Source of the DNA: Saccostrea echinata
Taxonomy: Eukaryota
Direction of reading: 5' to 3'
Assembly (NCBI RefSeq): GCF_033153115.1
Contig: NW_026889778.1
Location: 39,804,001-39,868,000, forward strand
Length of the DNA stretch: 64,000 nucleotides
The notes under the pieces: model-generated
The model's input: the letters and a program-made list of their open reading frames with translations, nothing else
What the model was told of the DNA's origin: nothing
The model's database searches: none
Shown: piece after piece, positions 29,520 to 63,722 of the stretch
Numbering within the stretch: the stretch's first letter is position 1
Layout of the letters: each line of letters opens with the position of its first letter
Translations under genes and position numbers: made by a program

Positions 29520-32500
29520 TTACACTTTGTTTTGAACAGATCTCTCTGCTTTCCTAGCACCGCTCTTCAATTTCTGAAATCTGTCAGGATTTCGTCTAAA
29601 ATACACAATAGTAGCTACCACAACCAAAGCCAAAACAATTCCAGCAACTGCGATACCAATGATGGGACCCAGGTTCTGGTGGGACCTGGCCACGTAGACA
29701 CCACCTTGGTCCACCTGGAAGCTGGCGGTTCCTCCGTTAACTGAGGATGGGATCTTTGTCCAGCTGGCCATATCCTGGAATTTGGAGCGGTAAATTTCCA
29801 CATTACTGGCATCAGGATCTACCTGCATCTGAATGGTAAAGGTGGCGCCATTCTGTGTCACCACAGTCTCTGGTCGGATGACAACAAAGTTACTGGCGTA
29901 GTCATCTCCAACCTGCAAATAAACATATTAACACTGAATTTGGTATTGTTCACGAAAAAGCAAAATTACTACAAATAAAAGCAAAATTAAAGCAACATTT
30001 TTTTTTTAATAAAAACTACATGTATATAAAAATTTCATTAAACATTCAATAAAATCTCATATGATTAGTACACTAGCAACACCATATGCTTTTATCATTA
30101 CAGAGTATTTTATTTTGAATTGTTGTGTAAGAAGTTTACAGTGTAGTTTATCTCAATAAAACCAACTTAATGTGTGATATGAATTTTTTTTAATATGAAC
30201 GGAGGGTATGGCTGGGTTACTCACTGGTTCACTCCTCAGTGACCCACTCCCTACTGCCTGTTCGGGGGACCACTCCTCCATTTGTAGGGTCTGTAGAGTG
30301 GCGAAAACACCTTGCCCGACCATCACCTTGGCTCTACTGTAAAAGTAAAGCCATAACATATAAATTTCACTCTTTATCATTCAAATAAAAACTCTACAAA
30401 CTAAAAATTTAAAATGAAGATCCATTCCCTTATTACTTATATGTATTTTCAAAATAATGGAGCGGATGATATTTGTTGTACAGTCCAAATGCTTAAGAAA
30501 CAAAAAAATATGAACCGATTTTCAACAAAATTTGAATCTTACTTATCAGCTAAAGCCAATGTTCCACCTCCCCAGCCAATGGCCTGGTTTCCTGTGAGGT
30601 AGGGTAAAACCGTGATCCTCCCCTTTTGATCTCGATTGGAGAAGTCATTGTTACGAGTACACATGTAGTGGTACGTCCCTTCCTGGGAAATCATACGGAG
30701 ACCAAGATCAAAATAAGTACCCGCATCATCCAGTTGGGAGAGTTCACCTCCAAAATGTCCTATAAAACAGATATGTCAGTCTATGGTGCAATAATTCTCG
30801 TGCATTTTTTAAAAAAAAATCTACATACAAGTAATTTCAAGTTTTATAACAAATTCTGAAAAGTTTTCCTACATGACAAACTTGAAGAGAAAGTTTTATT
30901 GTTGTGCACAAAGCACACTGTGGTCATTTCTTAAGATTATATGCTTCAAAAACACATTTTCTGCATAGTGCAATTTATCCCTAAATACCTGGAGAATTAA
31001 ATGCCAGGTGCAGCAGATCTTCTTGACTAAGACCAAGGAAAGATGAGTTGACAGCATGTGCTGGATAATTCACTCCATATTTTCCGTACACTGCCCCGGG
31101 GCCAAATCTGGTCAGACTGCCCTCATCATAGGTCGGATCTCCAAGCTGGACAATATTGTTCCTATCTGACCTGGCCTGTCCATTGCCGTCATTGTTTGGG
31201 TTGTTAGTATTGGAGCCTGTCCATCTGTACAAGTGAACAATGTCAATATCAAATACTGTAGAATTACTTTTTTCCCTGTGGGATTTATTTATGCTATGTA
31301 TACGGTCACAAATATTCCATGGAAATTTGTTTCAATGTACTTCATGTGCATCTTAGACCTTCAAGAAATCATCATAATATTCTACCTGTGGATTGAACAG
31401 AAATTGTGGTTCCCATGGAAAAAGGTACATGTATGTTTACAGTATGTGCAAAGACACAAAATATACAAAATTCAATGCGGTTAAAGCTCCCAAACAATTT
31501 CTTGTCTATTCACTTAAATAGTGAAATAACAAACGACTATAGGTACTACAAAGATCATGTCATTTTATCCATATTTTGTAATACATGTATCTTGTTGAAA
31601 TACCTCAGTGACAAGTTTGACTTTCTTTGTAGTAGAGTATGAGTTTGTTTTAATGTAAATACAAGTATGTACAAACGTGTTGTTTCAACTATCCATCTCC
31701 GTGTTTATTTATAGTATCCATATTTATTTACCCTAGAAGTGGAGGTACTTCATTTCCATGTTAATTCACTTTATATGTACAATACGTGTACTCTGAGGTT
31801 CCAATATGATTATGGTTAATGTAATATACATGTACATGTATGTTCAAATTTTCTGTCTTTGGGGGTTAACTCAGTGAATATGTATCTTAATTAAAGTTTT
31901 ATAGATTTTCAGCTCTATGTAAACTCACTGTATATGTATGTAATTTGAGGTTCCCATCTCCAGGTTGTTGGGTACAAAGTCGTATTCTACAGATGGGTAC
32001 ACCTGTACAATGTTTCCTCTCTTCCCTCGTACATTGAGATTGGAGATTGTTCTTCCCACGGTACTGGCCGGGCGGGGGCGAATGGCAAAAGCAAAAGACC
32101 TGTAAAGTTTATATTCAATTATATGTATCTTTTCAAAATACTTGAAACCCAGGGTCAGATACTATAATTGCAAAACTTTGGGTTGGGTTTCAACATTTCA
32201 GAGATATATATCCTCTCAAAAACAAAACCAAGTTTCAGGAAAAAAACAAAAACTAATTTAAGAATAAAGTGATATATTTGGTTGAAGCTCTCCATCTTTT
32301 ATCAAAATTATTGGTAGAACTATGTTTCAACATTCTCAAAAAATAAATTAATAAACTCTTAATCACCTGTCCTCAAATGTACGACCAAATTGTGCTGTGT
32401 TTACAGCAAGCTGGAGTTCAAAGTTCGCATCGTTGAAGACTTTAACTTCAGGGTTGTTTTCAAACAGGAAGCCCCTTTGGTTAGCCTCATTTTCAGACAA

Positions 32501-35500
32501 TCCGACTTTGTCAGCCAACTGAGCATCCACATCTGTATCATACGTAGTGTTCCAGCCATTGTAGTCACCAGTGGAAATATTGTACCTGTATATGAAGAAA
32601 TGACTCAGTAATGGAATCCTATGTACCATATACATGTATACTCGCATACAAGTTAATTTACTTATAAGTCGATTGCATTCCTTCAGCTTATTTGGAAGAA
32701 TATTAAATCGACCTGCTTGTAAGTCAGCAGGATTATTTTTTTTTTGCCAAATCAGTTGTTGATTTCAGATAAATATTTTATGGTATTTAACTGACGTGTT
32801 TCAAAGTATTTTTCAGGATACAACATCAATATTTAAAATTTTATTGACAAAATTATTAACAACAATACATTTAAAACAAGAATAAAATCATCACAATGAA
32901 ATAAAAAGATAACGAACAGTTACACACTTGCACTGCAATCTGTACACACTTGACAAGTACTAAAGGCATATAGAAACCTTAAAATTTCCTTTCCTGCTTT
33001 TTAAAATATTAAGAATTTATCTCGACTCTGTCAATTTTCATTGACATTATTTATGAAAATACTACATTAAGGACTAACTTATCAGTTGGACAGATTGTTT
33101 AAGACCAAAATTTATTTCCCAAAAATCTGACTTAAATGTGAGTATATATACATGGAAACAAGTAACAGTTACTATAAAGTCAGAACCAGACAATAAAGCT
33201 CCCCAATAAGGAAAGCAGATAATATAAAGCCTCTGTTATAGGGAAGTTGTATATTTTCCCCATCCCTCATATCAGATCAAAAAAGAAATTTGATTATAAA
33301 GAACTAAATTGAATAATTCTTAATCAAATGCATAATTCCTGTTCATCCCTACATAGCAATGTGTTAAAATTATGGTATTTATTCTTCAATTAATTTCATA
33401 AGCACCTTATTCTCATGGCACAATTCTCGTGAACAGTATTGGGCACAGTCCAGTTGAAGACCAGGGCGTGACCTCCGATCCCGTTACCTAGGTGATTGTC
33501 TCTAGAGAACTGGGTCTCACGGCAGTCTGGGGCCTCGATACCAAAGGCAGGGACCTCCTTCCACTCTGCCAATACACCATTGGGGTCGTTACTGGGGTAT
33601 CTGTACACCTATTCATTATCAACTTCAGTTTAGTAATATCAGACATCAAAATTGAAGAATACCAACACTTCAAACATAGTTTGTTTATTTACCGGTATAT
33701 AATCAGCTATTCAAGGAGATCACAAATTTTACAAAACAAATAAGAAGCAAACAATTCTGATTGTTAACTTTCTTCAATTTAAAGTTTCTTCTCTTTTTTT
33801 TTCAAGTTTGATAAAAATTTACTTTATTAATATTTGTATGAAATCATACACTAAATTTTTAAATGCCAAATTCAATGTCTTTTTACTAAATACTTATATT
33901 TAGGTATTTTTTTTAAAACTGTTAACTGACAAATACGAAAGTTCACTCAAGTTTTTACCCCTTCCCTCCCCTCCCCCTTCTTGCTAACTCTTTACTGTTC
34001 CCTAAAAAAAAAAAAATAATAAAAAATTTCTTCCATAAAAATTGCTAGAGTTATAACTGACCTCACAAGCCTCTTTAGTGTTGGGGAGGGTGATTCTGCC
34101 AAGGTTTTCTTGGAGAACCTCTGCTGGCATCACACAGCCGTACCGGGGTTTGACGTTGGCACTCTCAGCTTTGTAATAAGGACATCTGGTGGCATCATTA
34201 GTCAGAACAGCAATATCCTACAAGCACCACATATCAACATAAATATAACATTTTTTTTTTCAAACCAATTCCTCAATGGTAAGCAAGCTTAACCTCATAC
34301 ATGTATGTCTGCATGTATGCATAGTACTTAAAGTATTTTATAAATAATTTATATTAATTAAAATAAAAATATCTGAACAGTTTAATGTTTTACAAAGATT
34401 AATAATAGAAGTTTTTGTTCAATATTTTAAAAAGTCCTGTTCATCTTGCTTTATAACCTAACATTAATTTTGTAAAGAAAAACAGCTGACCATCCAAGGT
34501 GTGGGGCCCCAGTAAGGGTAATAATCCCGCTCCTCTGGGCACTCGTAACCATAGCGCTGACCATTGGGATTCTGTCGAGTGTTGACTGCCCTGTTTCTGT
34601 TATTCAGATTCTAAAATTTGAATTCAATAACCTTATTATATTACACTATAATCAACCTAATTATAAAACTTCACCTTTCATATTACATTGTAGTATGATA
34701 TCAATTTCTGCAAATCTGGGTGATATATTTTTGTAATTTGTAATTTTAGAAAAAAAACCCCAAATTTTATCAAGAAATAAGTATCTGATTTTGTATGCTG
34801 CAATCACAAAAGCTGTTTGCAAATTTCTATCGAAATCATATTTGTATCTGAAATATATTTCATTTCTAAAGCTCAGCTGTTCAAGTTTGCGTGGGAGGCA
34901 TTAATTACTACAATGTGTAACACCCACCTATTCAGATACATTTCTAATAGGCATTTTTTACAAACATTTAATTCACATGCAAGGTATGAAATTCTTTCCA
35001 CTGACCACCATTTATAAGGAAATAAATTTCCTGCTTAATCACGACACGTTACAATAAAGATATCAGGAAATAATAAACCCTTTCAATATTGTAAAACAAC
35101 CTAAGCTTTCCCTATGAAGTCTTATAAGGTTACAGGTAATTAATACCCCTCTCACCTGGTCTGCTATAAATAGCCCTTTGTTGCGTTGTCGTGACCGACA
35201 ATTAAGGTAATATTCATAGTTCTCGTTCATGCCATATTCTTTATCTGTATTGCAGTTTCCCAGTCGACAATCATCTGGATTGGTGGGTATAGTACTGAAA
35301 AGTAGAAATTTCATATTAAGCACAGTGGTGTCCATCAAACAATCTTCATTACAATTTACATTTCAAAACATTTATTCAGTTATTTTTAGAATTTTTTATT
35401 CATGTGCTGGATTCTGAAAAGAAATCTGTCAGAATTTGTTTATTTATCAGAATTAATAATTAATTAAATTCTCTTAATTTTATATCAGGGAATGTTCTTT

Positions 35501-38500
35501 GACAGCATCAATGATTCATTTTGATAATTTTGCACAGAAATATTGTCAGTAAATCTTTGAATATTTTCAATACTATATATATTGTGACAAGATGATAACA
35601 TTGTATGTACATTCATTAGATGAAAAAAAATTCATAAATTACTAAAACATGCAGACATATCTCTCCATGGAGTCAATCTCCCAAAGTAACATCTATATAC
35701 AAATAGTTCTTGTAAATTTCTAATGTCTACGTGGAAAGAGCCACATTTTTTTTCATAGTACAGATAACATAATATCTAGTGCTTTATAGTCTTTGTCGTG
35801 GTTTACTTTTTTTTAATTACACAGATGTTAATTTAATTACTTTGTGGAGGCACCATCCCTGAGCTGGTCGTCACACATATACTGTAGAATTATCTCACAA
35901 TGGCTGTTAGGGTTACTGCATGAATGCTGGTTTGTCCTGAAATAAATAAATATGTGCTATACATCAGATTATAAATATAAAGCAAAAAAAGGTTTAAAAA
36001 AAAAAAAACGAGAGAGAGAGATACAAAGTTTCCAATTCAATTGATTTTCAAATAATGTACGCAGGTGGGTTAAGAATCGCAATTTTCATCAATTGCTCAC
36101 AAATTATGTTCAATATATAAGGATTTTTCTATCTGCAAAGTTGATCCCTCATAGTTAATACATAAAATTGATCCTACCCCCACTGTCATCCCTTTAACTC
36201 TCCTATATACAAGTACATACCACTCTTTTGGTCAATCCTGTATATCCTCACACTGATTTTAACCCTATTAAACCTTCTCAGCCATCCCTGTACCTGTACT
36301 CACCATTCTATCTGTAGGGTTGACCCCACGTAGTAGTAGAGTGACCCAACATTGTATCCCCCTCTATTGTTGTTCTGAGAGTCAAACATCCTGAAAAATC
36401 GACAGATTGTGTTATACATAAATTAAAATATATCTTTCATACAACTACAATGTTTCTTTATCATAAAATGATAAAAAGTTTTTAAAAAATCGGAAGTTTT
36501 ATTTAAAAATAAAAGTTAAATATGCTTCTTTTGCTATTGAATAATTTTATTCACCACAATTTATACAGAAGTACTAAACTATTTCCTGTGATGTAAAATT
36601 CCTACAAATTAAGGATGTGCGGCATATTGCAAATCACCTGAGAATTACATTCATTGCCAGTACAAAACAATTGGAGTAATTAAGACACAGGTAATGATGG
36701 CCAGACAAAACCACAAAACTAGTAAACAAAACAGGTTTTACAGGAAAGGAAAATATTTCTGTTGTGTTTTTGTTTAATTTAATATGTCAAAAAGTAGACC
36801 ATCTTGATCCTTAACCACTTATAAGTGACGTATGTGTTTCACTAGCTAGGATACAGACTTTCAATATCCCAACCAACAGTAGTAAATATTCTTGATTCAC
36901 ATGGCAACCTTAATACTTAAGATTAGCAAAATATAAAAAAAAACATTTCAATTCTTTAATTTGTGTGATGCATTTATAACGAGCCCTGCAATTTAGCTTT
37001 TCAATTATTATGATAAATTATGCAAGCATTAAAAATAACAACAATAGTGTGTATGCATGCAAATGAATTTCATTTTTTGCCAATATCTTTCTTTATGGAG
37101 GAGAATTAGGACCATTTTTTTTTGGTGGGATTTGCATATATATATATGTGTTAAGATAGACCAACTGGCACCGCATGGGGACTTTAATTTAAAATACTTT
37201 TCTGTTGTTTTTAAATTCTAAAATAAGCCTTAATTTTGTTTCCTTACCTTTTATTATTCTGGACATTTCTGTTTTCTTCATCCAACCTGTTGTTACCTCC
37301 CCTGCAAAAATAATTGTCAAACATAATTAATCTATTGAAGATTTACTTATTGTACATAATTGCCTAAAAAGGTGAAAGGCCATTCTTTAGGTACTAGATG
37401 ATACAGTATGATACGTACTGTAAAAGCACGAATTTTAATTTACAGTATCATTGTTTGGTTATGTATGTATTTCATTTTGTGCAGTGACATAATTATACAG
37501 TGAAACCTGTCTAATCAGACAGGCAATGGAAGACAAATTTTGTGTCAGAATAGACAGACTGTCAGATTACACTGTGTAAAGAACATAGAAAACAGTAAAG
37601 TGGGAATGACAATATACAGGTCAGAATTCACAATGAAACGGATTGCACAGGTGTCAGATTAGACAGTTTTCACTGTATACACATGTATATGCGAATGATC
37701 AAGAGATTTTTTTTTTAAAAAAAGAAGAACTTCAAAAAAAAAAATATTTATTTATTTTGAAAAGGACTGACTCTTATTTCAAACAAAAAGACCCTCTACT
37801 TTGAGAGAGAATTTTTTTGCATTTTTAGAGTTTTTCAAATTTTTTTTTTTTAAATTTCTGATTAAAAAAAATTCACTTTGGATAGAAAAGTGAACTATCT
37901 ATACTATCCTGGGTATTCCCTGAAAACAAATAGAACTTAATATTAAATACATGCTTCTTTTCATCATATAGCTATATGTTATATATGTTGTACATTCTGA
38001 CATTCTTTCTTGCTCAGTGCTTTATCCTTTCAATTGCCAAACAGACAATGGATTCATAATAGATGGTTTTCCTATAACATATTTTTCCTTGGAGTTATTT
38101 CCCTTGGCTGCCATCTTGTAGGTCAAAGTAGTGAATTTCCCTCTTTGAGCAACCAATTTTAAAAATGCATGCCAAAAATATATAGGGCAAAAAATATTTA
38201 CAATATTGAAATTATGAATTAAAAGAAGCTTTAACAAATGTATATTCATAAGGAAAACAGTGTTATCTTCACCTCAGTGCCCAGTATAACAAATTGAACT
38301 TGGCTGAATAATGAACTTGGGATCTGGGGATGTTGACCTACAATATGGCAGCCATGGGAAATAACTCTTGCTTAAATCACCTTGATGGAATACCATCTAT
38401 ATGTTACATTAATACATAAACTAAATTTTTTGCAAGAAAGTTAACCTATGCAACTTCTGGGTGTATATGCATTTACTGACTAACACTAGATACGCAGAGG

Positions 38501-39795
38501 AATGTAGAAAACGTTCTGCACTTTAATGGTTTAGAACAATAAACTGATAACATGATAACATACTTAAACTGTGTACAAACAAAAGGTTCAATATTTGTCA
38601 ATAAAGATAAACTTTGGAGTGTATTTGAACAACAAGCTTCTACCATTGGTGAGCAGCGATCTCATTTTACCTACATCATATGATCAGTTTACAAGTCCAT
38701 GATAAATGTTTATGAGAAACTGTAGTGTTGTTGTAGAATTCCAAAATGAATGAGTCAGTGTTTTTGTCATCATATTTAGTTCAAGATACTGCAGAATATT
38801 GAAAGATTTAGTGAAACAATAAATAATACATTTGTCCCTTGAATTCAAACATATTATTAAGTATATAGTCAAGTGGGTTCAATAGTTATCACCTTGTACT
38901 GAAGAGTACAAATATTTAATTTTGGTGTTGCAGATGCAAATAAGTATAAATTGTTAGAGGTAAAATACTGGAGTAACTATATCCTGACAATGTGCATACA
39001 TGTTATCAATTATTTAATTTGATGGAGTGGTTGGAAGCACATCAGACTTTAATGCCTTAAATTAATTCTAGACTAAGGACATTTTTACAAGCTGGTACAT
39101 TATTACACTTGTGGTAGATTGCCGGTGGCCAGTTAGCTCAGATGGTAGGGCATCTGACTAGTGATTCAGGGAACCCTGGTTGAAATCCTGGTCTGGTTAT
39201 CACATTTTCTCCCCTCCTGTTACATACTTAATAGCAGTGTTTTCCCTTTATTTCTAAGTAAAAGGTTAGAGACCATTGTAACAGGCTTTGGGTTGAAGTT
39301 TATGACAAAACTCTGTGGACCTTACAACAACTTAATTTTGATTTTTCAAAATTTACATGTATTTTTATTATTCTGAAGCGGGATTTTTATCAATGGAAGC
39401 GGTCGATTTGGCCGGTAGTCTGTTCTTAGGGAAAACACTGTAATAGTCATCACATGACCAAGGATCAAGATGACATCTTATCAAACTATATGAAATTTTA
39501 ATACCTTATTGCAGTATTCATTAAAACATTCACCAATTAATACAAAACAATTGTTAATGACTGTTGACATTTGATATATGTGACATGATGATGCATTGTC
39601 TCTATACATTGTTCATGTTGTTACAAAACAAATATTAATGTTGACAGTTGTAGGAATAATAAATTAAAAATCATAACATTTTATACTAAAACTGTAATGA
39701 AATAATTACCTTGGATTATGTAAATAAACATCAGCTCTCACAGACTTCCATAAAACAAGACAAACAGTCAACAAGACAAAGTGAAAGTTACTCAT
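29520..39795 (-). CDS. DD3-3-family protein, membrane-anchored form (signal peptide + DD3-3 core + extra beta domain + TM + short tail), 762 aa, 14 exons
   Basis: Exons (5'->3'): 39795-39710, 37301-37248, 36390-36304, 35936-35841, 35294-35156, 34610-34491, 34217-34062, 33608-33406, 32585-32367, 32099-31929, 31224-30989, 30759-30543, 30336-30225, 29912-29520. All GT-AG and phase-consistent; 2289 nt. Motifs [100 protein letters not shown] segment [22 protein letters not shown] followed by RR. Confidence 0.88.
37498..37675. mobile_element. Tc1/mariner(pogo)-type MITE
   Basis: TA|CAGTGAAACCTGTCTAATCAGACA ... TGTCAGATTAGACAGTTTTCACTG|TA. Confidence 0.8.
38058..38402. mobile_element. Inverted-repeat element (MITE-like) in intron 1 of the membrane DD3-3 gene
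   Basis: GAGTTATTTCCCTTGGCTGCCATCTTGTAGGTCAA (~38091-38125) mirrors TTGACCTACAATATGGCAGCCATGGGAAATAACTC (~38333-38367). Outer ATAGATGGT/ACCATCTAT match. Confidence 0.6.
39110..39224 (+). mobile_element. 115-bp solo LTR containing a tRNA-like sequence (Helenus-type non-autonomous LTR element)
   Basis: TGT...ACA termini; flanks CACT/TACT (4-bp TSD, one mismatch). Internal box A TAGCTCAGATGG, anticodon-like arm CTGA-CTAGTGA-TTCAG, box-B-like GGTTGAAATCC. Confidence 0.6.
39235..39440. mobile_element. hAT-like MITE, 13-bp TIR, 6-bp TSD
   Basis: TAATAG|CAGTGTTTTCCCT ... AGGGAAAACACTG|TAATAG. Confidence 0.75.
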
Positions 39796-40320
39796 TTTGT
39801 CTTTGACTTCACACACAGTCTACTTAAAAATTTGCTTCAGTCTCTGTATTCGAGGTGTGTCAATATTTAAATCAAGCAGTAATTTCATCCAACCCCAAAT
39901 TAGGGAAACTGGACACCCTGTGACGTAGATAAGTATCGCAAGCACAGTAAATTATCGTATACACCGTTTACACATTATCTGACTCATGGTCACTCAACAT
40001 CCTGATTCCCTTTCTGCGTAAATATTCCGCGCGCAGGTATAGTTCGTAAATGATTTAAGTTCACGTTTTGAAAGAGTTTATTTATAAATAAGTTACTATA
40101 CTTTAAACTTAATTCTTAATTTTGATATTGGTAGGCACAAGAACTTCTAAGTGAAAATAGATTGTTGGTGTATATAAAGTTGCATTTACAAAATATCTAC
40201 TTTCATTTTCACGCGAATGAATATTATTTACAATGTGTATTTTGATCGCAGGTGAGGACTGAGGTGTGTAACTGTGTTACAGTATAACTGGCAGAGAGGA
40301 TAACAATAATAAAGGTAAGA
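39796..40320. promoter_or_regulatory. Putative bidirectional promoter of the two DD3-3 genes
   Basis: Lies between divergent ATGs at 39795(-) and 40720(+). CRE-like TGACGTA 39921-39927; AP-1 TGACTCA 39980-39986; CpG-containing patch. Likely + strand 5'UTR exon 40252-40314 (CAG acceptor, AAG|GTAAGA donor). Confidence 0.55.
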
Positions 40321-40719
40321 AAACACATAACAAACATACACGTAAATTTATTTAGGAAAAATCTTCCCTATTTATTGCCAAATGTGTAACGTTAGTGGGA
40401 AGATAATGAGGAAAAAAAAAATTCACGATAGTGTCAGCTGATAGAACCATGTATACTCTCCCATTTGTGAATTTTCAAAAAAAAAAAAAAAAAAATGAAG
40501 TTTTAAATTGAAAACACTAGCCTGTTATATTGGACGGACTATTAAGGGATATCGTAATGAAGAACTGAGTGTACTCCCTATAAAGGACAGTAACTCTGGC
40601 TTATAAAATGTATACATTATAGCAGATAAAAATAAAATGATTTAATTTTGTTGAAGTTTGATATTATAGACTTTTTCACATATTTTATGTAATTTCTTTT
40701 TTTTTGTTTTGATTTTAGA

Positions 40720-43700
40720 ATGAGGAGGCTGGTTCAGTTCTGTGCCTGTATGTTGCTGCTCCACCAAGTTGGAGCAGATTTGTACTTGCATATGCCAAGA
40801 GGCAGCAACAATAGACTTAACGAGGCCACAGCAACAAGGGCTAATGCTAACAGGGTGTTTGATTCACAGGTATGCCCAGTAACATTATACAATTATGGAC
40901 CTGTTTAGAAGGGAGACATCACAAATTATCTAGTCTAGGGTATCACCTGAGCCCGATGGTGACAACCCTACTCAGACCTAATAATTTGTGATGTCTCCCT
41001 TCTAAACAGGTCCATAATAGTTTTATTATCCTGATTGAAGAATCTGAATTTTATAAAATAGAATAGGATATGTCAATCAAACCTCTTGTGTTATCCTTAA
41101 CCCACTGTTCTGATTCCATACCGAGGGTACTTTCGAAATATATCAACAGACAATTTTGAGGTCACCATTAGAATTTATTGTTTACCAATACTGCATATAT
41201 ATCAATTATATATGAGAGGAACCTTGCTTATGACATTTTATTGTCATCTAAAGGGAGATAACACAGTTGCAAGTCTGCTCCCTTGCGCTATTTTATTGTC
41301 ATTTGAAGGGAGACAACACAGTTGTTACCCCATGTGTGAGGGGACATCACAGATTGTCTCCCTGCATGTGATGTTCTCTAGACCAATCAGATTAACTGTA
41401 TTATTCTGAAGGATAATAATGCTATAATTGCTTACCTTCTTGTATTTAACCCTAAAAATAGGTAATAACCTGTAGACTTTATAAAGCCTAAAATGACCCT
41501 CTGTTCAAGTATGATAGTTACATGTAAACTATGATAAAGTTAAAAGGAGTTGAACCCTTTTGCATACTTAGAAGATACAATTATATTAATTAGAATTTGT
41601 GCACCATAGTATTTTTTGTGTGTGTATGTGTGTGAAAACATCAGCTACCATACATGTAGCACAGTTTTTTTTTGTACAAAGACTGTTTTAAAAAACAATG
41701 TTGCAGAATTTTTTATGACCTTTATAGTCCATGCCATTTATATCTGTTTAAAAGGTGTGAGTGAAATAATCAAATATTTTTATATTGACATCATTTACAG
41801 AACAACAACAGAGGGGGTTACAACGTGGGAGATGTGGATAAAGACAAATCAGGAAACAATGAAGGAAACCAGTATAGAATGGTAAGTACCATGAGAGAAT
41901 GGTATTAAATGGTAGGTACCACAAGAGAATGCTTAAATGGTATAGAAGTACCCTGACAGAATGCTAAAATGGTATACAATGGTAGGTACCATGAGAGAAT
42001 GCTAAAAACCTGGTAATATAGAACTGCAAGTATTACTGGGAGAGAATAAATCAGCTACAACATGGTGAATACCAGTAATAATATTTAAAACGGTATAGAG
42101 TAGTATAAAACTATACAACAAATCAATGGAAGCAGTATAGAAAGTACTGTAGATTACTAAAGCAGTATAGAAAGTACTGTAGATTACTAAAGCAGTATAG
42201 AAAGTACTGCAGATTGCTACAGCAGTATAGAAAGTACTGCAGATTACTAAAGCAGTAAAGAAAGTACTGCAGATTACTAAAGAAGTATACAAAGTATTCA
42301 GAATTCCAGATTTACTTAAGCAGTATAGAAAGTACTTCAGATTACTAAAGCAGTATGCAAAGTACTGCAGACTACTAAAGCAGTATAGAAAGTACTCCAG
42401 ATTACTAAAGCAGTATACAAAGTATTCGGAATTCCAGATTACTTGAGCAGTATAGAAAGTACTTCAGAGTACTAAAGCAGTTCAGATTATAACAGTGTAG
42501 AAAGGACTCTAGATTTTTAAAGCAGTATAGAAAGTACTGCAGATTAATAAATGGCAGTATAGAGAGTACTCCAGATAACTAAAGAGGTATGAAAAATACT
42601 TCAGATCACTAAAGCATTGTAGAAAGTACTTCAGATTAAAAATGTATAGGAATTACTAAAGCAGTATAAAAAGTACTGCAGATTACTAATTTGAAAGCAT
42701 TATAAAATGTATTCTGGAATACTAAAGCAGTCTAGAATGGCTAGTAACATATATTAATTAAACATGGGGGACTCATAAATACCATACATTGAGGAGACCT
42801 TGTACAGATAAATGACATAAGGTGCCATAAAGATTTAAAGAAGCAGACATTTTATTCATTGATCATCATCATAGGTTTCAGCACTTTCTGCATAAATTCA
42901 TAACAAAATATGCCAGATAACAAATATGTAAGTGGCATGGAAATTAAAAAAAATATTTGGAATGAAATGTGAATTTTGATTTTAGTATTCAATTAGCTAT
43001 GTAGGTGGAGGTGGTTTTGACCCACACCTGATATAGATTTCATTTCTAGTGTGTATAATGAATAAAATGTCAGTATCATGTTTTGAAGAAATAGAAAAGT
43101 TAACATAAATCGCAAAATCAGAAATGTGGGTGTGATACCGTTGAACCTTTTTGTGACAAGCTGCTATAATGGTGGCTTGTCATGAAAACATGCAACTGTT
43201 CAACAATTTGCAAGTTTTTTTCCGTAATTTTATCCCCAAATTGTTATAGAATTACTGTCTCAAGGAAAAAAGCATCAATAACCCTTAAAGCTGACCTAAA
43301 TTTACAATCACAAGACTTATAAAAGTATTTACTGGTAATTGGTCATGACACAAACTATTCTGGATGCTCAAGTGGTGCATGAAGATTGTCACAGACTGAA
43401 CACTGCAATATATGATGCAAGCTTTAAAGCATTTTGAATTTAAATGAATTTGAAGTATATGATATTGAAATTTAATGTTTACATGGTAGTTCTAAACAAG
43501 CAATAATTGTACAATCTTAAAATATTTCACTTTGTATCATAGTACATATGCACTATGTAAATTATGTAAAGCGATCAGTATAAAATGACTCAAGAATATT
43601 CTTCTGTCTCTCAAGGAAGCAGATTTAACATAGTATTAAATAATGACACTGGTTTTCAACCTCAGAAGTCCGTATAGAGGAAGCTGTGTTAGTTTCAGTT

Positions 43701-46700
43701 ACAAGATCCAGGAAGTCAGCAATCCTGGATGACTAAATGACAATTACCTTGTGTGTACGATATTGTCAATTACGGCAAACTACTTAACAACGTACGTCTT
43801 CATATTGACGCACCTTAAAATATTACTTAAGTTATAATTTGCATAAATATTTACTTTCTCACTTGAATTTAATCTCATGATTTTGAACTAGATCTATATG
43901 TTACACATCATATCAGATTTTGAATTTTTTTTGCAGATCTTTAGGGGCATTATAACAATATGCAGACCTATATAAATTAAAGACTCATAAACTAGTAATT
44001 TTACACTGTCCACTGGTGTCATGATTACAAAATTTCTGAAAATTTTCAGTTAGGAACAATTTAAAAGGATGAGATTGACTTTGCTTATCACTATACTATA
44101 GATCACCAAATGTTTGTGACACCTTATTTTCTAGAGATAGTTGGTTGATTTATTAAGGAGTGATATGATAAATACAAAAAATGGATACATGAGTGGTATA
44201 TATTTTTGAACCTATTTTGGTTATAAATGATGCAAATAATATTAAAGAAATTGTGAAACTTTTTTTGATGTCCAAAATTCTACCTTTTTGCCATCACCCT
44301 AATAATTCAATCTATACAACTTTTTATTACTTTATAGGACATTTAATATATAGTGAAACTTTGAATGAAATAATTAATATTATTAAAATCTATGCAGCTA
44401 AACTTCATGATACTTAAACAAACACAATCTTCATTCTGATTTTCATAATTTTTGAAAAGTTTGTTTCATCTGTCCTTAAGTGAGGAAAAATTCATGAAAT
44501 TTGGTTGTTGCTGTATGCAAGAATGGAATTTTCACCAGCAGTCTTGTGTAACACCAAAATAAAGGTCTCGTGAATAAAAAGTGATTTACAGTATTCCATA
44601 CATTGCCCACGTGGCGCAGTGGTAAGAGCATCTGCTCTAGAGTCGCAGAGTAAGGAGTTGAACCCACTGTGGGACATGGAGACCAGTCCCTCAGATGAGA
44701 CCATATAAACCAAGGTCCCGTGTCGCAGTAGGTGCTGGCATGATAAAGATCCCTCACTGCTCAATGGCCCTGAGGGCTGAGCATAGGTCAAAATTTGCAG
44801 CTCTCCATCGGCAAGTGGTGGTGTCTCCATATATGTGAAAAATTCTCGAGAGGGATGTTAAACAACAAACAAACAACAGTATTCCATACATATAAAATTC
44901 CTGTGGAAAAAAATTGAAAATATATTCATTTTGTATTGCATTAAAATTTTTTATAGCAATATTTCCAAAGTGGGTCAGCTACCCCAAATGTGAAAGACAA
45001 AACTTACCTGACCGTAGAATGGACCAATCAGCATGGATGTGGGGGGAGTGAGAATACAAACCCCCAGAAACACAACTGTCACATGGTGCTCCAGTACATG
45101 TGTCAGGATGATGTGTCATCACCTGTAGGTAAGTTTCCATAGCAACCTCAGGTAGATATTTTAATCATACACCTAACTCATCCATTTGTAATGGTGCATG
45201 GATGAGTTAGGTGTATGCAGAGAAGCTTTTGTGATACAAACACAGTCAAACCTCATTATCTTGATTCTGAAGGGGCTTTGAGTACTTTGACATATCCGAG
45301 TATTTATAGAGACACATAAAGGTTAAAATACGTAAAGAAAATGAGGGTAGGACTTTGGTCTCACTTAAAACATATCCATGTATTCAGGATATCAGTGTTC
45401 AAGCTAATTTTCAACTGTATACATGTAAATAAAATGAACTAAATCTTAGGCAAGTGAAAAGTTTGCTAATTAGTTCAGCAGGGTAATTATAACCTTTTAC
45501 ACATAGGTACTGCCACTGGACTTTATCTATTTTCTTATCACAAAAAATGTATTCTATGTATTCTCCTATCTGATTTATTAAGTAGGGGGTTATATTTTTT
45601 CTGATAAGAAAGATAGGTAACATCAAGTGTCTGTTGTTTAAGGTGCTTGTAAGAATACTTGTTCACTTATGAGTCCAGATAACATGGTTTAATAATAATT
45701 ATTTTAAATTTGCTTTCAGGTACAGCAGACACTTTAAGAAATGGTGTCTCAACTCAAACTCCGAATCACAACAGGGCTGGTAGTTTAAATGAGAACAAAA
45801 ACACGGCCCAGAACAGAAAGAATAACAATATTAATACGGAGAGGGTGCTGCAGGAATCCTGGGATTGGTACGACAAGTGTTACATGAGAGAGAGAAACAA
45901 AGGTAAGGGGTGGGGGTCTTTATGATCTCCTAGCCAGGAAAGGGTTAAATTATCAGATTAAGAGATAGGTAAAGGGAGGTAACTCATACTTTGTAAAGAT
46001 ATGGAAACATGGGATTGGTACGACAAGTGTTACATGAGGGAGAGAAACAAAGGTAAGGGCACAATTCTCTGATTCCCAGGCAAGAGGTACATATGTAGTT
46101 ATCAAATTCCTAGGTATAAAAAAGGAAGTAGCTGATAATTTGTAATGGGATTGCATCAAGATATCAGTATATAATAGCATCATTGAATCAATTAAAGGTC
46201 AAATTACTTATTCAATTTAGATTTCTGATACTTGAGAATATAAGAAAATGCAAATATTAGTCAAAGAGAGATAACTGCATATGATACAATGCATTAATAT
46301 GGCTTTTATCATTGTTGAAGTTTCATGGGAGCGATCAAATAAGGAGAAACAATTATTACAAAGTTACAAATTCAAACATATTGAACATTTTTAAAAATTA
46401 ATTTATAATCATTAATGAAATTAACTTTACTCAAATCCGGATTCAGACATTTTATCTTAAATGTTCAAATTTCTCATGGTAGGACTGTTTAATGCTGACC
46501 AGAAGCTAAAGTCAAACAATGGGCTGGGATTTAGTAGTGCCATCTACACTCGTCAGAATCCCAATGGGAATCGCTATGGTTACGAGTGCCCAGAGGAACG
46601 TGATCACTTCCCCTATTGGCATCCCACCCCCAGGACTGATGTTGCCATCCTAACAGATAATACATCTCTTTGTAGGTAGGTGTCAACATTTTTTGTAAAC

Positions 46701-49700
46701 ATGCAGTGACAAGAAATGTAGTTATAAAGGTAGAAAAAAAAGTCTCAAAAGTATTAATATTTAAGGGGGACATTTTTTTTTTAAAAACTTGAAACAAAAA
46801 ATTAGCTATTTATTTAGCATGGATTTTTTTAGTCTTTCCTTATATGATACATGTACATGTATATGAATATTTGTTTTTCATTTAAAAAAAAAACAACAAA
46901 AATGTGACTCTTTATTGCATTTATGAAATAGTTTAAGATGCATCTCTGAAGTTATGTACAAAAGCTACCTATAATTTTTAAAAAATATAAAATCTTTTAT
47001 TTCTTTATTGCAGTTTCTTTGAGGAGGGAAGTTTTAACAGGAAGGCTTACGGAGAGTGTATAGAAGAGTACGGTGATGGTAGTCGTAAACACTGGTCTCG
47101 CTGGAACAACAGACAAGAATGTACAGAAAATGGTGGACAGTGGGTGGAGCTTAGCAGCTATATTGAAAAAGCTACACGTATGTATATAAACTGTTTTCAT
47201 TAACTTATTTCTTTATTCATATTTTATATTTTTTTTATATCCAGTAATCTGTAAGGGAATAATTGTCATTTATATGACCCCCCCCTTCTCTCAGTTACCA
47301 GAAGCATTTGTATTATTAACTTAAATCCTGTACAAAATTTCAGCACTAAACATGTAGCTTTAACAAAATTAAAACATCTTTGAGACACAATACAGTGCAC
47401 ATAACAGGTAATTTTAAGACATGCAAAAATTAAGTCATTGAAAAAAAAATCATCTTTAAACCATCAAAGTATTTGATCAATTATAACATATATAGACAGA
47501 TGGCATTAAGATGATTTTTACAGTTTTCTTGTTGTTTAAAAGTTTATGTGTTTGACATGTTGATGTAAATTTCCCAGAATTCACCTCTGAAGGTCAGTGC
47601 ACATCTCAGGCGGCGCAGGGAAACAGGTACGTCTGGGCAGTGCCATACGATGCCACTGACGTCACCAAGAAAGAGTGTCTAGTTCAGGCGCCACCAATAG
47701 ACTGTCAACAGGCAGACTGGTCAAGGTAGGGGAATTAAGCATTTAAAAAACTGCCTATAAAACACAAATTTCTGTCAAGATGAATTATTTAGTGTGCCCA
47801 ATGTGATAACAAATAACAGAAAATAACTAAATCATTTTACTTGTATCAGTAAGCAGAGAATAATTAATTGTTTTTTTTCAGCACTTGAATCTTACATATA
47901 TGTCAGTAAAATGATTACTTTAAACTCTTTACAGATCAAATCATCTTGGAAATGGTATAAATGGAGAGGCCAATCGCTATCAATGGGCTCTGCCATATTT
48001 CCCATCCAACAAAGACAAGAGATGTGTGTTTAGGATGAGGTAATGTCTTTCATAATACAAGTATGTTAATATATAGGATCAGTAATTATTCCAACAGCAT
48101 ATTATAACCTATTGAGTCCATATCAATATTATTTCTTCAGCCAGTCTATATATATTGTACTGCCTTTAAACATCTGATAAATGTCTTCTTTTTAAAGCCA
48201 AATCAAGCTGTACATGTAATTTTATTTATGCCCCTCAACTGTACATCAAAACAGTTATTATATGATTAAATTACAAATAAAATTTTATTTTTGTTTTCAG
48301 GTACAACATTTCCACAGATGACTATGCCCCTTATTCCACTGATAGCTCTAGGAATTTGTAAGTAATTGCTGATTTTAATTAATTTTTAAAAATTTTTCCT
48401 ACTCTCTATGTAAACATTTAAATCCTATCCTACATCAGCACTCAAGCATTCTCAATGGGAGATTTAAAAAAAAAAGAGTTAATTTAAGTAAGAACACACA
48501 CTGTATAAGTAGAATTTTTAGCAAAGATTCAATTTTGGCATTAAATTATTACTAAGAGTGTTAGATCGCTAAATTTGAATATTGCTAACAGTTCATTCCA
48601 TATAGGAGATAGCAGCTATCTTTCTTGGCACCATAAAATCACTAAAATTAATTCTCACTGAAAATGTATACCAATTTTTTTAGGGCAAATCGCTAAATTT
48701 GTGTCTAGCTAAAAATTCCACTATATGGTAATGCCAACATTGTATGTCTATGAATGTAAAATGTTGTGAAATTGTTTGAGAATACAGATAAAATGATAAA
48801 GAGGAAATCTTCCAATGTTATAGGATATTGTAGCCCTAATTTTTTAGTTCATAAAAGAAATCGATAATTGTTCAAAAATGTAAAGAATTTTCTTTTATTC
48901 ACAGAAATAATGGAATAGAGGGTATTACCTCCCCTATCGAGGACAACCCATATGTTGATGTTGGAGGTAGATCTGCCCTTCGGTTGAACATCAACACCGA
49001 CCAGACAGGGCGTATATTCCAGGACCGCAGTCACCTCTTTAAGCTCCTCACCAGACCATCCTCCATCCAATCAGATAACATCTTCAACATAAATGTCCGA
49101 GGAAAGCGCGGAAACATAGTGCAGACATACCCAGCTGTGGAGTACGATTTTATCCCTAATAATCTACAGTTGTCAGAATCAGACTCCGTACATATACAGT
49201 GGACAGGATCAAATTCACATAACAATGGTGGGGGTGGAGGTGATGGACAGGCTGGGGATGAGGGTCAAGGCACTGGAGGTGAGTGAGCAGGTGGACATAA
49301 AAACTCTTGTTGAGATTGTCCCTGTAGATATAGAAATGAATGGGAGAATTTTAGATAATATCATAAACTTTTTATCATACAGGTATATAGCAAATGAATT
49401 TAATTTGGTTTAAAATTTCTTCAAAAAATGTCTTTTATTTGAATCTGAATGCCACTGTGAAGCATATCATACATATATTAGTTAAACATTTTCTTGCTAC
49501 AGTATTTTTAAAACCTGGTCGAAGAGCGTTCAAACTTAGGGAGACAACCAGTTCATAGAATATGTTTATAGATTTTCTGATCTGCTAAGGGATGACTTTT
49601 GGCTCTTTTCCAGGCACTGACAGAAGCAATATTGTACAGATTGCTGATCTGAATGATAATTTTCCGATGCCTTTTGAAAAGACCAATATGTGGACAAATG

Positions 49701-50292
49701 CTAACATTCGCTGGATTTACCATGGTAAAACTGATGTCTCCCCAGAAAATTTAGCTGTTTCCATGGCATCTGCTGGCTATTACAGGTAATTTTATTTAGT
49801 TTACTTTCTCTTGATCTTAATTATCAGAATATCAATGATCTTGTATGATTGTAATCCAAATTTTTTTGCAATGTAGTATTAGTCAGCAGAATTTTCATGC
49901 ATTTAAGAAAAACTTATTTGAATCATTAATTCTGCTCCATTTTTTTTTCAACTTCAGTCTTTGAAGGGAAAAAAATTAGTCATAAAGCCATTACCCTTTA
50001 ATCCTCAGGTCTTTTCATCTTTCAATATCATATTTAATGAAGAACTGTGTGCAGAATAAATCTCAACCATTCTTTTATTTACAGATGCATAAAGAAACAA
50101 GACTGCCCTGAGGCAGCACACAATGACTACATCGTGGAAACCAAAACCAAAATGAACGATTTACTCAACAATGCCCCCGCCTCGTTCACAGGTGCAGTCC
50201 TGAGGTTTAAAAAGGGAACCTATCATTATATGTCAACGAGAAATAACAACTTCTCCAACAGAAGTCAGAAATCAACACTGACTGTTGTATAA
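40720..50292 (+). CDS. DD3-3-family protein, secreted form, 668 aa, 12 exons
   Basis: Exons 40720-40869, 41801-41881, 44957-45128, 45720-45902, 46483-46675, 47014-47177, 47578-47725, 47935-48039, 48301-48357, 48905-49278, 49614-49785, 50085-50292. All GT-AG and phase-consistent; 2007 nt. Signal peptide then [14 protein letters not shown] and the same core motifs as the - strand paralog. Ends [18 protein letters not shown]-stop with no TM segment. Confidence 0.9.
40892..41420. mobile_element. Hairpin-headed non-autonomous element in intron 1 of the secreted DD3-3 gene
   Basis: Perfect 38-bp inverted arms at 40892-40929 and 40981-41018, then a segment bounded by TTATTATCC...GGATAATAA. Architecture shared with 3797-4173. 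Confidence 0.7.
42130..42745 (+). repeat. ~30-bp minisatellite (AAGCAGTATAGAAAGTACTGCAGATTACTA)n, about 19-20 units
   Basis: Directly visible tandem units. Explains the spurious repetitive ORF 42002..42292. Confidence 0.9.
44604..44875 (+). mobile_element. Full-length tRNA-derived SINE (Meta-domain type) with 16-bp TSD
   Basis: ACAGTATTCCATACAT is duplicated at 44588-44603 and 44876-44891. Box A TGGCGCAGTGG; central GATGAGACC..TAAACCAAGGTCCCGTGTC block; (CAAA)n tail. Confidence 0.9.
45243..45417. mobile_element. Degenerate pogo/Tc1-type MITE
   Basis: CAGTCAAACCTCATTATCTTGA ... TCAAGCTAATTTTCAACTG|TA imperfect TIRs. Confidence 0.5.
48500..48730. mobile_element. Degenerate MITE
   Basis: ACTGTATAAGTAGAATTTTTAGC ... 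GCTAAAAATTCCACTATATGGTA imperfect TIRs; internal ATCGCTAAATTTG repeats. Confidence 0.5.
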
Positions 50293-63356: not shown

Positions 63357-63722
63357 ATGGAAAGTAACGAATCAAACAAGAAACGTTTAGAAGTTGTGGA
63401 TTCATCTGGATCATTAGACGAAACATGTAAGACATTTGTTTTCCATAATGAGGACCACACATTGGGGAATTCATTGCGATACATGATAATGAAAAACCCC
63501 GAAGTTCAGTTCTGTGGCTACAGTGTGCCCCATCCTTCAGAAAACAAAATCAACTTTAGAATACAAACACACGGCGAGGAGGCGACAGAAGTATTGAAGA
63601 AAGGGCTCAAAGATCTTAACAGTGTCTGTGAACATGTACTGGAGACTTTTCAGAGTAGTGTTCGGGATTATAAGCGGCGGAATTTCTCATCGGATGTTGA
63701 AATGGCAGATGTACAAAGTTAA
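63357..63722 (+). CDS. POLR1D: DNA-directed RNA polymerases I and III subunit RPAC2 (AC19/RPA16), 121 aa, uninterrupted ORF
   Basis: RPB11/AC19-family signature [46 protein letters not shown]. The CGY and IMKNPEV residues fit AC19 rather than RPB11. Confidence 0.93.

Follow-up and report, generated by a model that had tools for sequence, protein, structure and literature searches.

An ancient head-to-head pair of DD3-3 paralogs, one membrane-anchored and one secreted, in the oyster Saccostrea echinata

Two genes of the DD3-3 family, one encoding a membrane-anchored and one a secreted protein, diverge from a short spacer in the genome of Saccostrea echinata. The locus raises the question of why two such genes lie side by side, and what their products do outside the cell; few animal protein families without known chemistry are as well conserved as DD3-3. 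On balance we consider it probable that A, a type-I membrane protein, and B, a secreted one, form an ancient pair on a bidirectional promoter, that both serve redox or metal handling at the cell surface, and that shared control has kept them adjacent.

Gene models and layout of the locus

The window is the whole stretch of DNA that was analysed (64,000 nucleotides), and all positions given here refer to it. Gene models were rebuilt from this 64-kb window by exon-wise tblastn with homologues combined with scoring of GT-AG junctions. Single exons were used as search queries first, followed by the database proteins P0286 and P0454, which are identical to the models. The models of gene A and gene B equal RefSeq XP_061187895.1 (P0286) and XP_061187896.1 (P0454), respectively, letter for letter, and their introns are GT-AG throughout. 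The features are:

29520-39795, minus strand: gene A, membrane-anchored DD3-3 paralog (A-type), 14 exons, 13 introns, 762 aa; equals XP_061187895.1
39710-39795, minus strand: A exon 1, with ATG, signal peptide and mature N-terminus from Asp22
37248-37301, minus strand: A exon 2 (54 nt), bearing the GGNNRLDE motif
36304-36390, minus strand: A exon 3
35841-35936, minus strand: A exon 4
35156-35294, minus strand: A exon 5
34491-34610, minus strand: A exon 6
34062-34217, minus strand: A exon 7
33406-33608, minus strand: A exon 8, ending at the intron position common to B (phase 2, before YNIST)
32367-32585, minus strand: A exon 9
31929-32099, minus strand: A exon 10, with an 11-residue motif; the cupredoxin-like domain begins
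30989-31224, minus strand: A exon 11
30543-30759, minus strand: A exon 12; the core ends and the ZU5/GAIN-like domain begins
30225-30336, minus strand: A exon 13, ZU5/GAIN-like domain
29520-29912, minus strand: A exon 14, with the remaining ZU5/GAIN-like domain, TM helix (about 29672-29592), basic tail and stop
39796-40719, no strand: divergent spacer, 924 bp from ATG to ATG; its CpG-rich patch at 39796-40400 is a candidate shared promoter
40200-40314, plus strand: candidate non-coding first exon of gene B, proposed from the sequence, its start guessed at about 30 nt after a TATA-like word
40720-50292, plus strand: gene B, secreted DD3-3 paralog (B-type), 12 coding exons, 11 introns, 668 aa; equals XP_061187896.1
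40720-40869, plus strand: B exon 1, with ATG, signal peptide and mature N-terminus from Asp20
41801-41881, plus strand: B exon 2
44957-45128, plus strand: B exon 3
45720-45902, plus strand: B exon 4
46483-46675, plus strand: B exon 5
47014-47177, plus strand: B exon 6, insert specific to B
47578-47725, plus strand: B exon 7
47935-48039, plus strand: B exon 8, ending at the common phase-2 intron position
48301-48357, plus strand: B exon 9
48905-49278, plus strand: B exon 10, with an 11-residue motif and WTGSNSH with the B-side His
49614-49785, plus strand: B exon 11
50085-50292, plus strand: B exon 12; the cupredoxin-like domain ends, stop

An earlier, sequence-only reading of this DNA had described two complete divergent DD3-3 genes around a spacer of about 0.9 kb, and the rebuilt models bear this out. 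They also reproduce the 13 and 11 introns with one common position (phase 2, between R and YNIST), which lies at residue 313 of A and residue 398 of B. Gene B encodes a signal peptide and the core and stops 9 residues past the last core motif, and the 668-residue model has no hydrophobic segment beyond the signal peptide, in agreement with the secreted protein ending at the core that had been proposed. In A the signal peptide and core are followed by about 140 extra residues, a TM helix (residues 711/713-739) and a basic tail; these additions and the length of 762 residues stand, but the tail after the AF2-modelled helix has 23 residues and not the 25 given earlier. The proteins are 46.6% identical over 539 aligned columns. 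A recent inverted duplication, which had already been argued against, is ruled out by this identity, by the single common intron and by the separate clades of A and B, each with a support of 99 and each reaching from sponges to chordates. A third DD3-3 locus was not found in the genome of S. echinata.

The CpG observed/expected ratio of the spacer is 0.87 overall and 1.13 in 39796-40100, compared with 0.16-0.26 in the flanking introns, and for this reason the spacer looks like a single promoter region common to A and B. Its TATA-like words at 40171 (plus) and 40086 (minus) and its CRE-like word at 39921 may be promoter elements. An acceptor AG at 40717-40718 precedes the ATG-bearing exon of gene B by one base, and a strong donor (AG/GTAAGA) follows position 40314. 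Both genes are expressed, since spliced transcript-length contigs in the Logan assemblies encode full-length oyster A and B (P0284 cluster, n=155; P0178 cluster, n=89). Co-regulation of the pair and the placement of its transcription start sites are presumed from the DNA letters.

Age of the paralogs and their neighbourhood in animals

Both proteins have full-length matches to DD3-3 proteins, hundreds of them at E=0, and carry the RefSeq name 'protein DD3-3-like'. A signal peptide, an N-terminal block of 16 residues and two C-terminal core blocks of 11 and 13 residues are common to A, B and the family. An alignment of 100 sequences has 28 invariant and about 130 near-invariant columns, which are found in both A and B, and just 5 columns tell the A clade from the B clade. 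Judging by this alignment, both paralogs are under strong constraint. Orthologues from different phyla are 55-60% identical; vertebrates have no members of the family. Pfam searches with single exons and with both full proteins gave nothing real, only a sub-threshold TM-like match for P0286. Among PDB sequences a profile search had no match, i.e. no solved relative, and a search of the ESM Atlas with residues 22-400 of A returned the family's own cluster alone, at 0.83.

In the FastTree phylogeny the A clade has a support of 100 and the B clade 98; with IQ-TREE (LG+C20) both have 99. Sponges, placozoans, cnidarians, spiralians and deuterostomes are present in each clade. Because each paralog's own clade spans sponges, placozoans, cnidarians and bilaterians, the split of A and B is, by these trees, older than animals, which gives a date to the paralogs that the sequence-only reading had called ancient.

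That reading had also stated that DD3-3, which takes its name from a Dictyostelium protein, has no established biochemical function, and this still holds; one family member, HrSMLP1, is described as a haemocyte membrane allorecognition antigen of an ascidian (PMC6916515). HrSMLP1 was purified from ascidian haemocytes, out of the insoluble fraction of their plasma membrane; its calculated mass is 73.8 kDa and no TM segment was reported (PMC6916515). From its size we infer that it is of the B type, as this mass fits the length of B and not that of an A-type protein of about 770 residues.

Adjacency in other genomes was judged by consecutive accessions or locus tags and by contig identity, the head-to-head orientation being read directly in this oyster. 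The Saccostrea accessions XP_061187895/96 were the positive control for the accession method, as the window shows their adjacency directly. At least 12 species, from 7 phyla, have A and B with consecutive accessions or locus tags, and the linkage is thereby found well outside this lineage; its restriction to this lineage had been named in the earlier reading among the points that would count against its proposal. The groups with neighbouring A and B are molluscs, annelids, a nemertean, a hemichordate, amphioxus and a starfish, while in Trichoplax the two are close to adjacent:

Molluscs, consecutive numbers: Patella 14827/14828; Mactra 14982/83; Solemya 8819/20; Elysia 19800/01; Potamilus 8882-84
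Annelid, consecutive accessions: Owenia CAH1783889/90
Tubulanus, consecutive: two haplotype copies
Ptychodera, consecutive accessions: XP_070559546/47
Branchiostoma, consecutive: four annotations
Asterias amurensis: A and B in a cluster
Trichoplax H2, near-neighbours: RDD42900/42903, with two accession steps between

Paired DD3-3 accessions have also been given for C. gigas, Capitella and Saccoglossus (PMC6916515). In Hydra and Hydractinia, A and B share a chromosome but are separated by about 700-800 accessions; in the bryozoan Watersipora they are far apart on the same chromosome, and in Nematostella and the tunicate Clavelina they are on different chromosomes. As adjacency was lost in these animals without loss of either gene, the coupling is not indispensable. 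Rhopilema was rejected as a further unlinked case, its A-type P0553 being on the same 8.6-Mb contig as B. A metagenome scan yielded mostly transcript-length contigs, and gene order could be read from contig L008 alone; this scyphozoan-like contig carries DD3-3 paralogs that likewise lie head to head, as a second and independent pair.

The pair is real and ancient. Its long-standing neighbourhood in many phyla points to shared control, and selection has presumably kept the two genes adjacent.

Predicted folds and fusions to reductase modules

Structures were predicted for A (pLDDT 83.9, pTM 0.83) and B (pLDDT 86.8, pTM 0.89). In both, the core is modelled as an LPMO-like N-domain packed on a cupredoxin domain without type-1 ligands. 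From the mature Asp onwards and along its full length (A 22-396, B 20-468), the N-domain matches about ten LPMO/X325 chains with Z between 5.5 and 6.9, which makes the predicted likeness only middling, as a Z below 8 can reflect a common arrangement. This match rests on whole-model searches because there is no natural fragment consisting of the N-domain only. The histidine brace of LPMOs is absent, since the mature N-terminus is Asp (Asp22 in A, Asp20 in B) in place of the N-terminal His, and the same holds for 316 of the 324 DD3-3 family members checked.

The cupredoxin fold is matched by residues 403-575 of A (Z 7.8 with 5fc9, about 7 with plastocyanins) and by residues 474-668 of B (Z 8.6 with 7zqe_M, 8.4 with 7z3b), with 93-121 residues aligned, nearly the whole target chain. 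In the alignment, the type-1 copper ligand set of His, Cys, His and Met (or Gln) is not kept in this domain of A or B. The position of the Cys varies, being occupied by Cys556 in A, by Ser in B and by Gly in P0021, the B protein of the starfish, and A has Asn559 and Asn564 at the presumed His and Met positions, an equivalence set by eye from the motif and not by residue-level structural alignment. Invariant Arg, Lys and Asn occupy the loops in place of the type-1 ligands. A classical blue-copper site was rejected, the ligands not being conserved.

The extra domain of A (residues 574-710) matches the ankyrin ZU5 domain 3f59_C with Z 14.8 and an rmsd of 2.3 A over 125 aligned residues. Further fold matches are UNC5b (Z 9.8) and the GAIN domain of BAI3 (Z 9.4), and residues 574-712 also match GAIN domains of adhesion GPCRs and the FIIND of NLRP1/CARD8. 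Pfam gave no ZU5 or GPS match in A, and no H-[FL]-[ST] motif (the HFS/HLT type of autoproteolysis) occurs in residues 574-712. Autoproteolysis of the GAIN/FIIND type was rejected, having no supporting motif.

Proteins P0124 and P0077 carry Pfam PF01794, PF08022 and PF08030 downstream of the DD3-3 core. Among the best 120 matches to the P0124 core, at least 75 bear NOX/ferric-reductase domains, and these come from several eukaryotic supergroups. Fusions of the core with a complete NOX/ferric-reductase module are present in chytrids, an aphelid, Amoebozoa, dinoflagellates and haptophytes. The domain composition suggests extracellular redox or metal handling as the function of DD3-3. Such handling at the cell surface appears the most likely activity because the same ectodomain is fused to a module that delivers electrons to the outside. 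A function of this kind could account for reports, scattered so far, that place DD3-3 in allorecognition, immune challenge and settlement.

Shared control, partnership or relic, and comparison with known systems

With the spacer as a bidirectional promoter, tethered and soluble versions of one extracellular activity would be made together, and the need to keep the common control region would preserve the adjacency. The activity would most likely be redox or metal handling at the cell surface, with A acting at the membrane, near a reductase, and B in the extracellular fluid or matrix. Direct binding of A and B would be possible under shared control, though not required.

Such binding is central to another explanation, in which secreted B docks on A, either as a heteromer derived from an ancestral homomer or through the juxtamembrane domain of A, and adjacency provides stoichiometric co-expression, much like that of the collagen IV pair COL4A1/COL4A2. 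Conserved adjacency across phyla agrees with this, and so does HrSMLP1, for which tethering by a partner would fit an insoluble-membrane protein with no TM segment reported (PMC6916515). The physical partnership put forward in the sequence-only reading was examined by complex prediction, and the result weakly favours it: A 403-712 with B 20-668 scored 0.55 (runs 0.54, 0.55 and 0.58) against 0.32 for the best control, with a contact agreement of at least 36% and a partner pLDDT of at least 66, but by calibration most passes at 0.55 are wrong, unless the guess is likely beforehand. The calibration set had 78 solved complexes, of which 51 reached the pass mark, and 108 mismatched pairs, of which 2 did; scores up to 0.60 comprised 5 of the 78 solved complexes and all 4 mismatches that passed. 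Furthermore, cutting A at 403 bares the face that packs on its own N-domain, and the homologous N-domain of B could fill it artefactually. Several lineages retain both genes unlinked, and soluble-only A-types exist (Actinia, 569/570 aa; Lottia, 617 aa; scyphozoan forms without TM), so that A is not always an anchor. As the reason for the arrangement, a physical partnership of A and B is in our estimate rather unlikely.

The layout could also be a passive relic, i.e. a local duplication not yet separated in slowly rearranging genomes, with the genes independent and their order without functional meaning. The broken linkage in hydrozoans, Nematostella, the bryozoan and the tunicate, all of which kept both genes, is what this would predict, as are the two accession steps between A and B in Trichoplax. 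Against it, A and B split before animals and yet are still immediate neighbours in the groups named above, from molluscs to a starfish; in metazoan microsynteny, neutral decay of gene order usually leaves far less immediate adjacency over more than 550 million years. The sole CpG-rich and apparently unmethylated patch moreover lies in the shared spacer, and contig L008 has an independent second head-to-head pair. A relic of this kind has, in our estimate, a rather low probability, and the shared promoter serving a tethered A and a soluble B is preferred.

What is new is the division of the family into a membrane-bound and a secreted orthogroup, both of which predate animals. The neighbourhood of A and B in many phyla leads to a regulatory hypothesis, the shared bidirectional promoter, and to a partner hypothesis, and the predicted folds and the widespread NOX/ferric-reductase fusions suggest cell-surface redox or metal handling as the function. 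A much bolder proposal, and quite improbable as a whole, is that DD3-3 proteins are an unrecognised pan-eukaryotic class of extracellular redox or metal-handling enzymes, whose core of an LPMO-like domain with N-terminal Asp and a cupredoxin domain lacking type-1 ligands receives electrons from NOX/ferric-reductase modules, and that in animals the system was divided before Metazoa arose into a tethered A and a soluble B acting together at the cell surface, with the bidirectional promoter kept for more than half a billion years.

The literature on DD3-3-like proteins treats a single family and does not describe two ancient orthogroups, conserved adjacency, the fold or the NOX fusions. In its layout the pair resembles COL4A1/COL4A2, likewise ancient divergent paralogs with a short common spacer (below 1 kb in the oyster pair, at 924 bp), whose head-to-head arrangement on a bidirectional promoter is conserved across animals (PMC12141075). 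For collagen IV, assembly of the chains into a common protomer is proven, whereas for A and B the in-silico support for assembly is weak and the head-to-head order is read in the oyster alone.

The C-terminal core domain has the same fold as the cupredoxins (plastocyanin, AcoP, FtrB and nitrite reductase domains). The extra domain of A is predicted to lie outside the membrane directly ahead of the TM helix, like a GAIN domain, but unlike the GAIN domain of adhesion GPCRs it precedes a single-pass helix and not a 7TM bundle. The LPMO and LPMO-like copper proteins (AA10, AA15, AA13 and AA11; X325/Bim1) are extracellular, like DD3-3. X325 members are tethered to the membrane by GPI, which parallels the tethered form A, and LPMOs need external electron donors, which parallels the NOX fusions; the N-domain of DD3-3 differs in being about twice the size, with many disulfide-bearing inserts and with Asp for His. 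Oyster A and B are unlike DUOX in having no reductase module, and any reductase partner of theirs is hypothetical. In the protist and chytrid fusions, as in DUOX, the ectodomain precedes the three parts of the reductase, namely the ferric-reductase TM, the FAD and the NAD(P)H domains, and the DD3-3 core occupies the place of the N-terminal, extracellular peroxidase-like ectodomain of DUOX.

The two gene models and their shared spacer

The window is low in GC (about 33%) and free of N runs. When one half of the region was compared with the other by tblastx, a collinear series of paralogous exons was found on opposite strands. One conserved exon (48984-49286, +), used as query against a library of 1.84 billion proteins, matched 1081 cluster representatives (E <= 0.001). 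With the library matches as guides, gene models were built by exon-wise tblastn and scoring of GT-AG junctions; one last small exon and those at the 3' end of gene A were taken straight from the sequence.

Features of the window
7997-8398, +, last exon of a fibrinogen-C-domain (FReD) gene (Pfam PF00147; E 1e-17 to 5e-23 over the three)
20975-21340, +, last exon of a second FReD gene
25881-26300, +, last exon of a third FReD gene
29520-39795, -, gene A, membrane-anchored DD3-3 paralog, 14 exons, 762 aa
39796-40719, spacer between the ATGs of A and B
40720-50292, +, gene B, secreted DD3-3 paralog, 12 exons, 668 aa
53844-55538, +, intronless ORF, 564 aa, B-box and NHL repeats (TRIM-NHL-like)
57020-58717, +, intronless ORF, 565 aa, B-box and NHL repeats (TRIM-NHL-like)
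63357-63722, +, 121-aa ORF, RNA polymerase Rpb3/Rpb11 dimerisation domain (PF13656, E 1e-31)

All introns of A and B are GT-AG, the ATGs are 924 bp apart, and the proteins share 46.6% identity across 539 aligned columns. The two genes have a single intron position in common (phase 2, before YNIST). The models agree letter for letter with the Saccostrea echinata database proteins P0286 (XP_061187895.1) and P0454 (XP_061187896.1); the genes themselves are annotated already. The head-to-head DD3-3 pair noted in the sequence-only reading is thus fully borne out by the rebuilt models and the identical RefSeq proteins. No further DD3-3 locus was found in the S. echinata genome.

Around the pair, the three FReD exons upstream of the 3' end of gene A form a tandem cluster of lectin-like genes, the TRIM-NHL-like ORFs are tandem paralogs within a GC-richer stretch downstream of gene B, and the last ORF is probably an intronless gene for a small RNA polymerase subunit.

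Gene bodies in this genome are CpG-depleted. The CpG observed/expected ratio is 0.87 over the 924-bp spacer and 1.13 at 39796-40100, against 0.16-0.26 in the flanking introns, a pattern typical of one unmethylated promoter patch between A and B. Each strand has a TATA-like word, the two being about 85 bp apart (40086, -; 40171, +), an acceptor AG lies one base ahead of the ATG exon of B, and a strong donor follows 40314. We infer a short non-coding first exon of B, and the start sites of the two genes may be just 100-400 bp apart. Many transcript-length contigs encoding full-length oyster A and B proteins are present in the Logan assemblies, which is indirect evidence for expression of both genes.

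The spacer also holds a 19-nt A-run (40477-40495), with matching T-runs just ahead of the ATG exon of B. At 40877-41033 and 41235-41324, B intron 1 contains a 60-nt inverted repeat (arms 85% complementary, 37 nt between them) and, 300-400 bp downstream, related direct copies; these repeats look like small MITE-like insertions.

Age and linkage of the paralogs

A-like and B-like representatives used as queries returned relatives in the thousands. Two trees were calculated, one with FastTree on 169 full-length proteins and one with IQ-TREE (LG+C20 PMSF) on 70 phylum-balanced rows. Both contain the same two clades, with support of 100 for A and 98 for B in the former and 99 for each in the latter. 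The A clade takes in Sycon, Trichoplax, anthozoans, hydrozoans, scyphozoans, spiralians, echinoderms, a hemichordate, amphioxus and tunicates, together with two unicellular lineages that carry the labels Opistho-2 and Colp12. To the B clade belong Oscarella, Oopsacas, Ephydatia, Trichoplax, cnidarians, rotifers, a centipede, spiralians and deuterostomes, and protist sequences join both sides of the tree. With sponges to deuterostomes on both sides, the duplication is older than the last common ancestor of animals, and the description of A and B as ancient paralogs stands.

Only five columns discriminate the clades. One column, in the WTGSN-x-H block, splits the tree sides cleanly: it is His in 100% of the B clade and in 76% of the outgroup sequences taken together, and Asn in 100% of the A clade and in 67 of the 77 proteins fused to NOX-type modules.

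The order of accessions or locus tags was used as a proxy for gene order, with the window as positive control (XP_061187895 is physically beside XP_061187896).

Species with consecutive or near-consecutive identifiers for A and B
Patella caerulea, SNE40_014827/014828
Mactra, ACF0H5_014982/83
Solemya, ScPMuIL_008819/20
Elysia chlorotica, EGW08_019800/01
Potamilus, CHS0354_008882-84
Owenia, CAH1783889/90
Ptychodera, XP_070559546/47
Branchiostoma, four annotations, e.g. Hypp3392/3393 and Bbelb_202260/202270
Tubulanus, two haplotype copies, XP_074661734/35 and XP_074646799-801
Asterias amurensis, cluster, XP_071805948 to 956
Trichoplax sp. H2, RDD42900/42903, 487-kb contig

For Crassostrea gigas, Capitella and Saccoglossus the A and B accessions are given in pairs (PMC6916515), and in many more species both genes are on one contig or chromosome, judged by the equal length of their contigs. 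They are about 700-800 accessions apart on one chromosome in Hydra and Hydractinia, far apart on one chromosome in Watersipora, and on different chromosomes in Nematostella and Clavelina. Linkage is therefore not confined to the oyster lineage, as such identifiers extend from molluscs to Branchiostoma, Asterias and Trichoplax. The A/B pair is real, ancient and kept as neighbours far outside the oysters; that the two genes are linked purely passively we consider improbable.

A JGI metagenome contig (Ga0187750_108397, 5163 nt) carries at 940-4855 a head-to-head pair of intronless A-clade paralogs with about 520 bp between them and 66% DNA identity. In the tree they are sister to A-type proteins of the scyphozoan Rhopilema; one retains a remnant of a ZU5-like domain, and both lack a TM helix. 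This is therefore an independent hint that divergent pairing in the DD3-3 family arose, or was kept, more than once.

Tethered and soluble products

Neither protein matched any Pfam family or any PDB sequence. AlphaFold models made from family alignments were confident, with pLDDT 83.9 and pTM 0.83 for A, and 86.8 and 0.89 for B. By structure comparison of the model, the extra domain of A (aa 574-712) has a ZU5/GAIN-B/FIIND-type fold, matching the ankyrin ZU5 chain 3f59 (Z 14.8, rmsd 2.3 A, 125 residues aligned) as well as UNC5b, adhesion-GPCR GAIN domains and NLRP1/CARD8. Inspection of this domain showed no autoproteolysis motif, and the TM helix follows it directly.

A physical partnership of the two proteins had also been proposed. 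Complex prediction, within 1000 residues, paired mature B with A 403-712 (its cupredoxin and ZU5-like domains). The score was 0.55 (runs of 0.54, 0.55 and 0.58) against 0.32 for the best control, with at least 36% of contacts agreeing between runs and partner pLDDT of at least 66. In calibration 51 of 78 solved complexes passed, as did 2 of 108 mismatched pairs, and the range up to 0.60, in which our score falls, held 5 of the 78 solved complexes and all 4 mismatches that passed. The prediction lends the partnership weak support. Moreover, cutting A bares a face normally packed on its own N-domain, which the homologous N-domain of B could occupy as an artefact. HrSMLP1, an ascidian allorecognition antigen of the family with the size of a B-type (secreted) protein, has a calculated mass of 73.8 kDa and no reported TM segment, and was isolated from insoluble haemocyte plasma membranes (PMC6916515), which indirectly fits tethering. 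An obligate complex is at odds with the invariant core, which is the same in both paralogs apart from so few discriminating columns, with the unlinked genes of several lineages, and with lineages in which A-type forms are solely soluble. Taken together, direct binding of A and B seems unlikely.

Shorter RefSeq isoforms of A-type proteins (P0391, P0392, P0394, P0429, P0323) are present in Branchiostoma lanceolatum (633 and 685 aa, compared with 775), Tubulanus (722 aa, compared with 762) and Nematostella (703 aa, compared with 771), and alternative splicing may be a further source of soluble A forms.

The best-supported reading is that the pair would supply, under common control, tethered (A) and soluble (B) versions of a single extracellular activity, which is probably redox or metal handling.

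NOX fusions and relation to known folds

NOX/FRE modules take electrons from NAD(P)H in the cytosol and deliver them on the outer side of the membrane. In P0124 (Ceratiomyxa) and the P0077/P0435 cluster (Emiliania huxleyi) the DD3-3 core is followed by ferric-reductase TM, FAD-binding and NAD-binding domains, and with the core of P0124 as query at least 75 of the 120 best matches bear these three Pfam domains, so the fused form is widespread. The matches come from the chytrids Spizellomyces, Gonapodya, Gorgonomyces, Boothiomyces, Phlyctochytrium, Rhizophlyctis and Globomyces, an aphelid, the dinoflagellates Symbiodinium, Durusdinium and Effrenium, and many protists. Such fusions fall on the A side of the tree, beside the membrane-bound forms. 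The fused N-terminal ectodomain is most simply read as acceptor or user of the electrons, which points to a probable redox or metal-handling reaction of the core at the cell surface.

The fusion proteins collected (P0124, P0077/P0435, P0466-P0562) come from chytrids, an aphelid, Amoebozoa, dinoflagellates and haptophytes. One JGI record is titled 'predicted ferric reductase/plastocyanin', and two matches carry an extra SH3 or AMP-binding domain.

The division into two orthogroups, their conserved adjacency, the assigned folds and the wide spread of NOX fusions appear to be new; neither the retrieved papers that mention DD3-3 nor the FRD-superfamily survey consulted describes them.

The C-terminal core domain is a cupredoxin (Z 7.8 in A, with plastocyanins at about 7; 8.6 and 8.4 in B) that has not retained the type-1 ligands in A and B. 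The Cys position is Cys in A, Ser in B and Gly in the starfish orthologue, and Asn stands at the positions we judged to match the ligand His and Met. The exon of this domain matched P0140 (3670 aa, on a 6.19-Mb contig) in 11 separate stretches, as expected of a putative multi-repeat relative. Some ten LPMO or LPMO-like chains (AA10, AA15, AA13, AA11 and X325 members) aligned with the N-terminal domain of both models from end to end of that domain, with Z values of 5.5-6.9 that are middling and no proof of homology; recurrence in two independent models gives the match some weight. These alignments always begin at the mature N-terminal residue, which is Asp in 316 of 324 DD3-3 family members, whereas LPMOs are defined by His.
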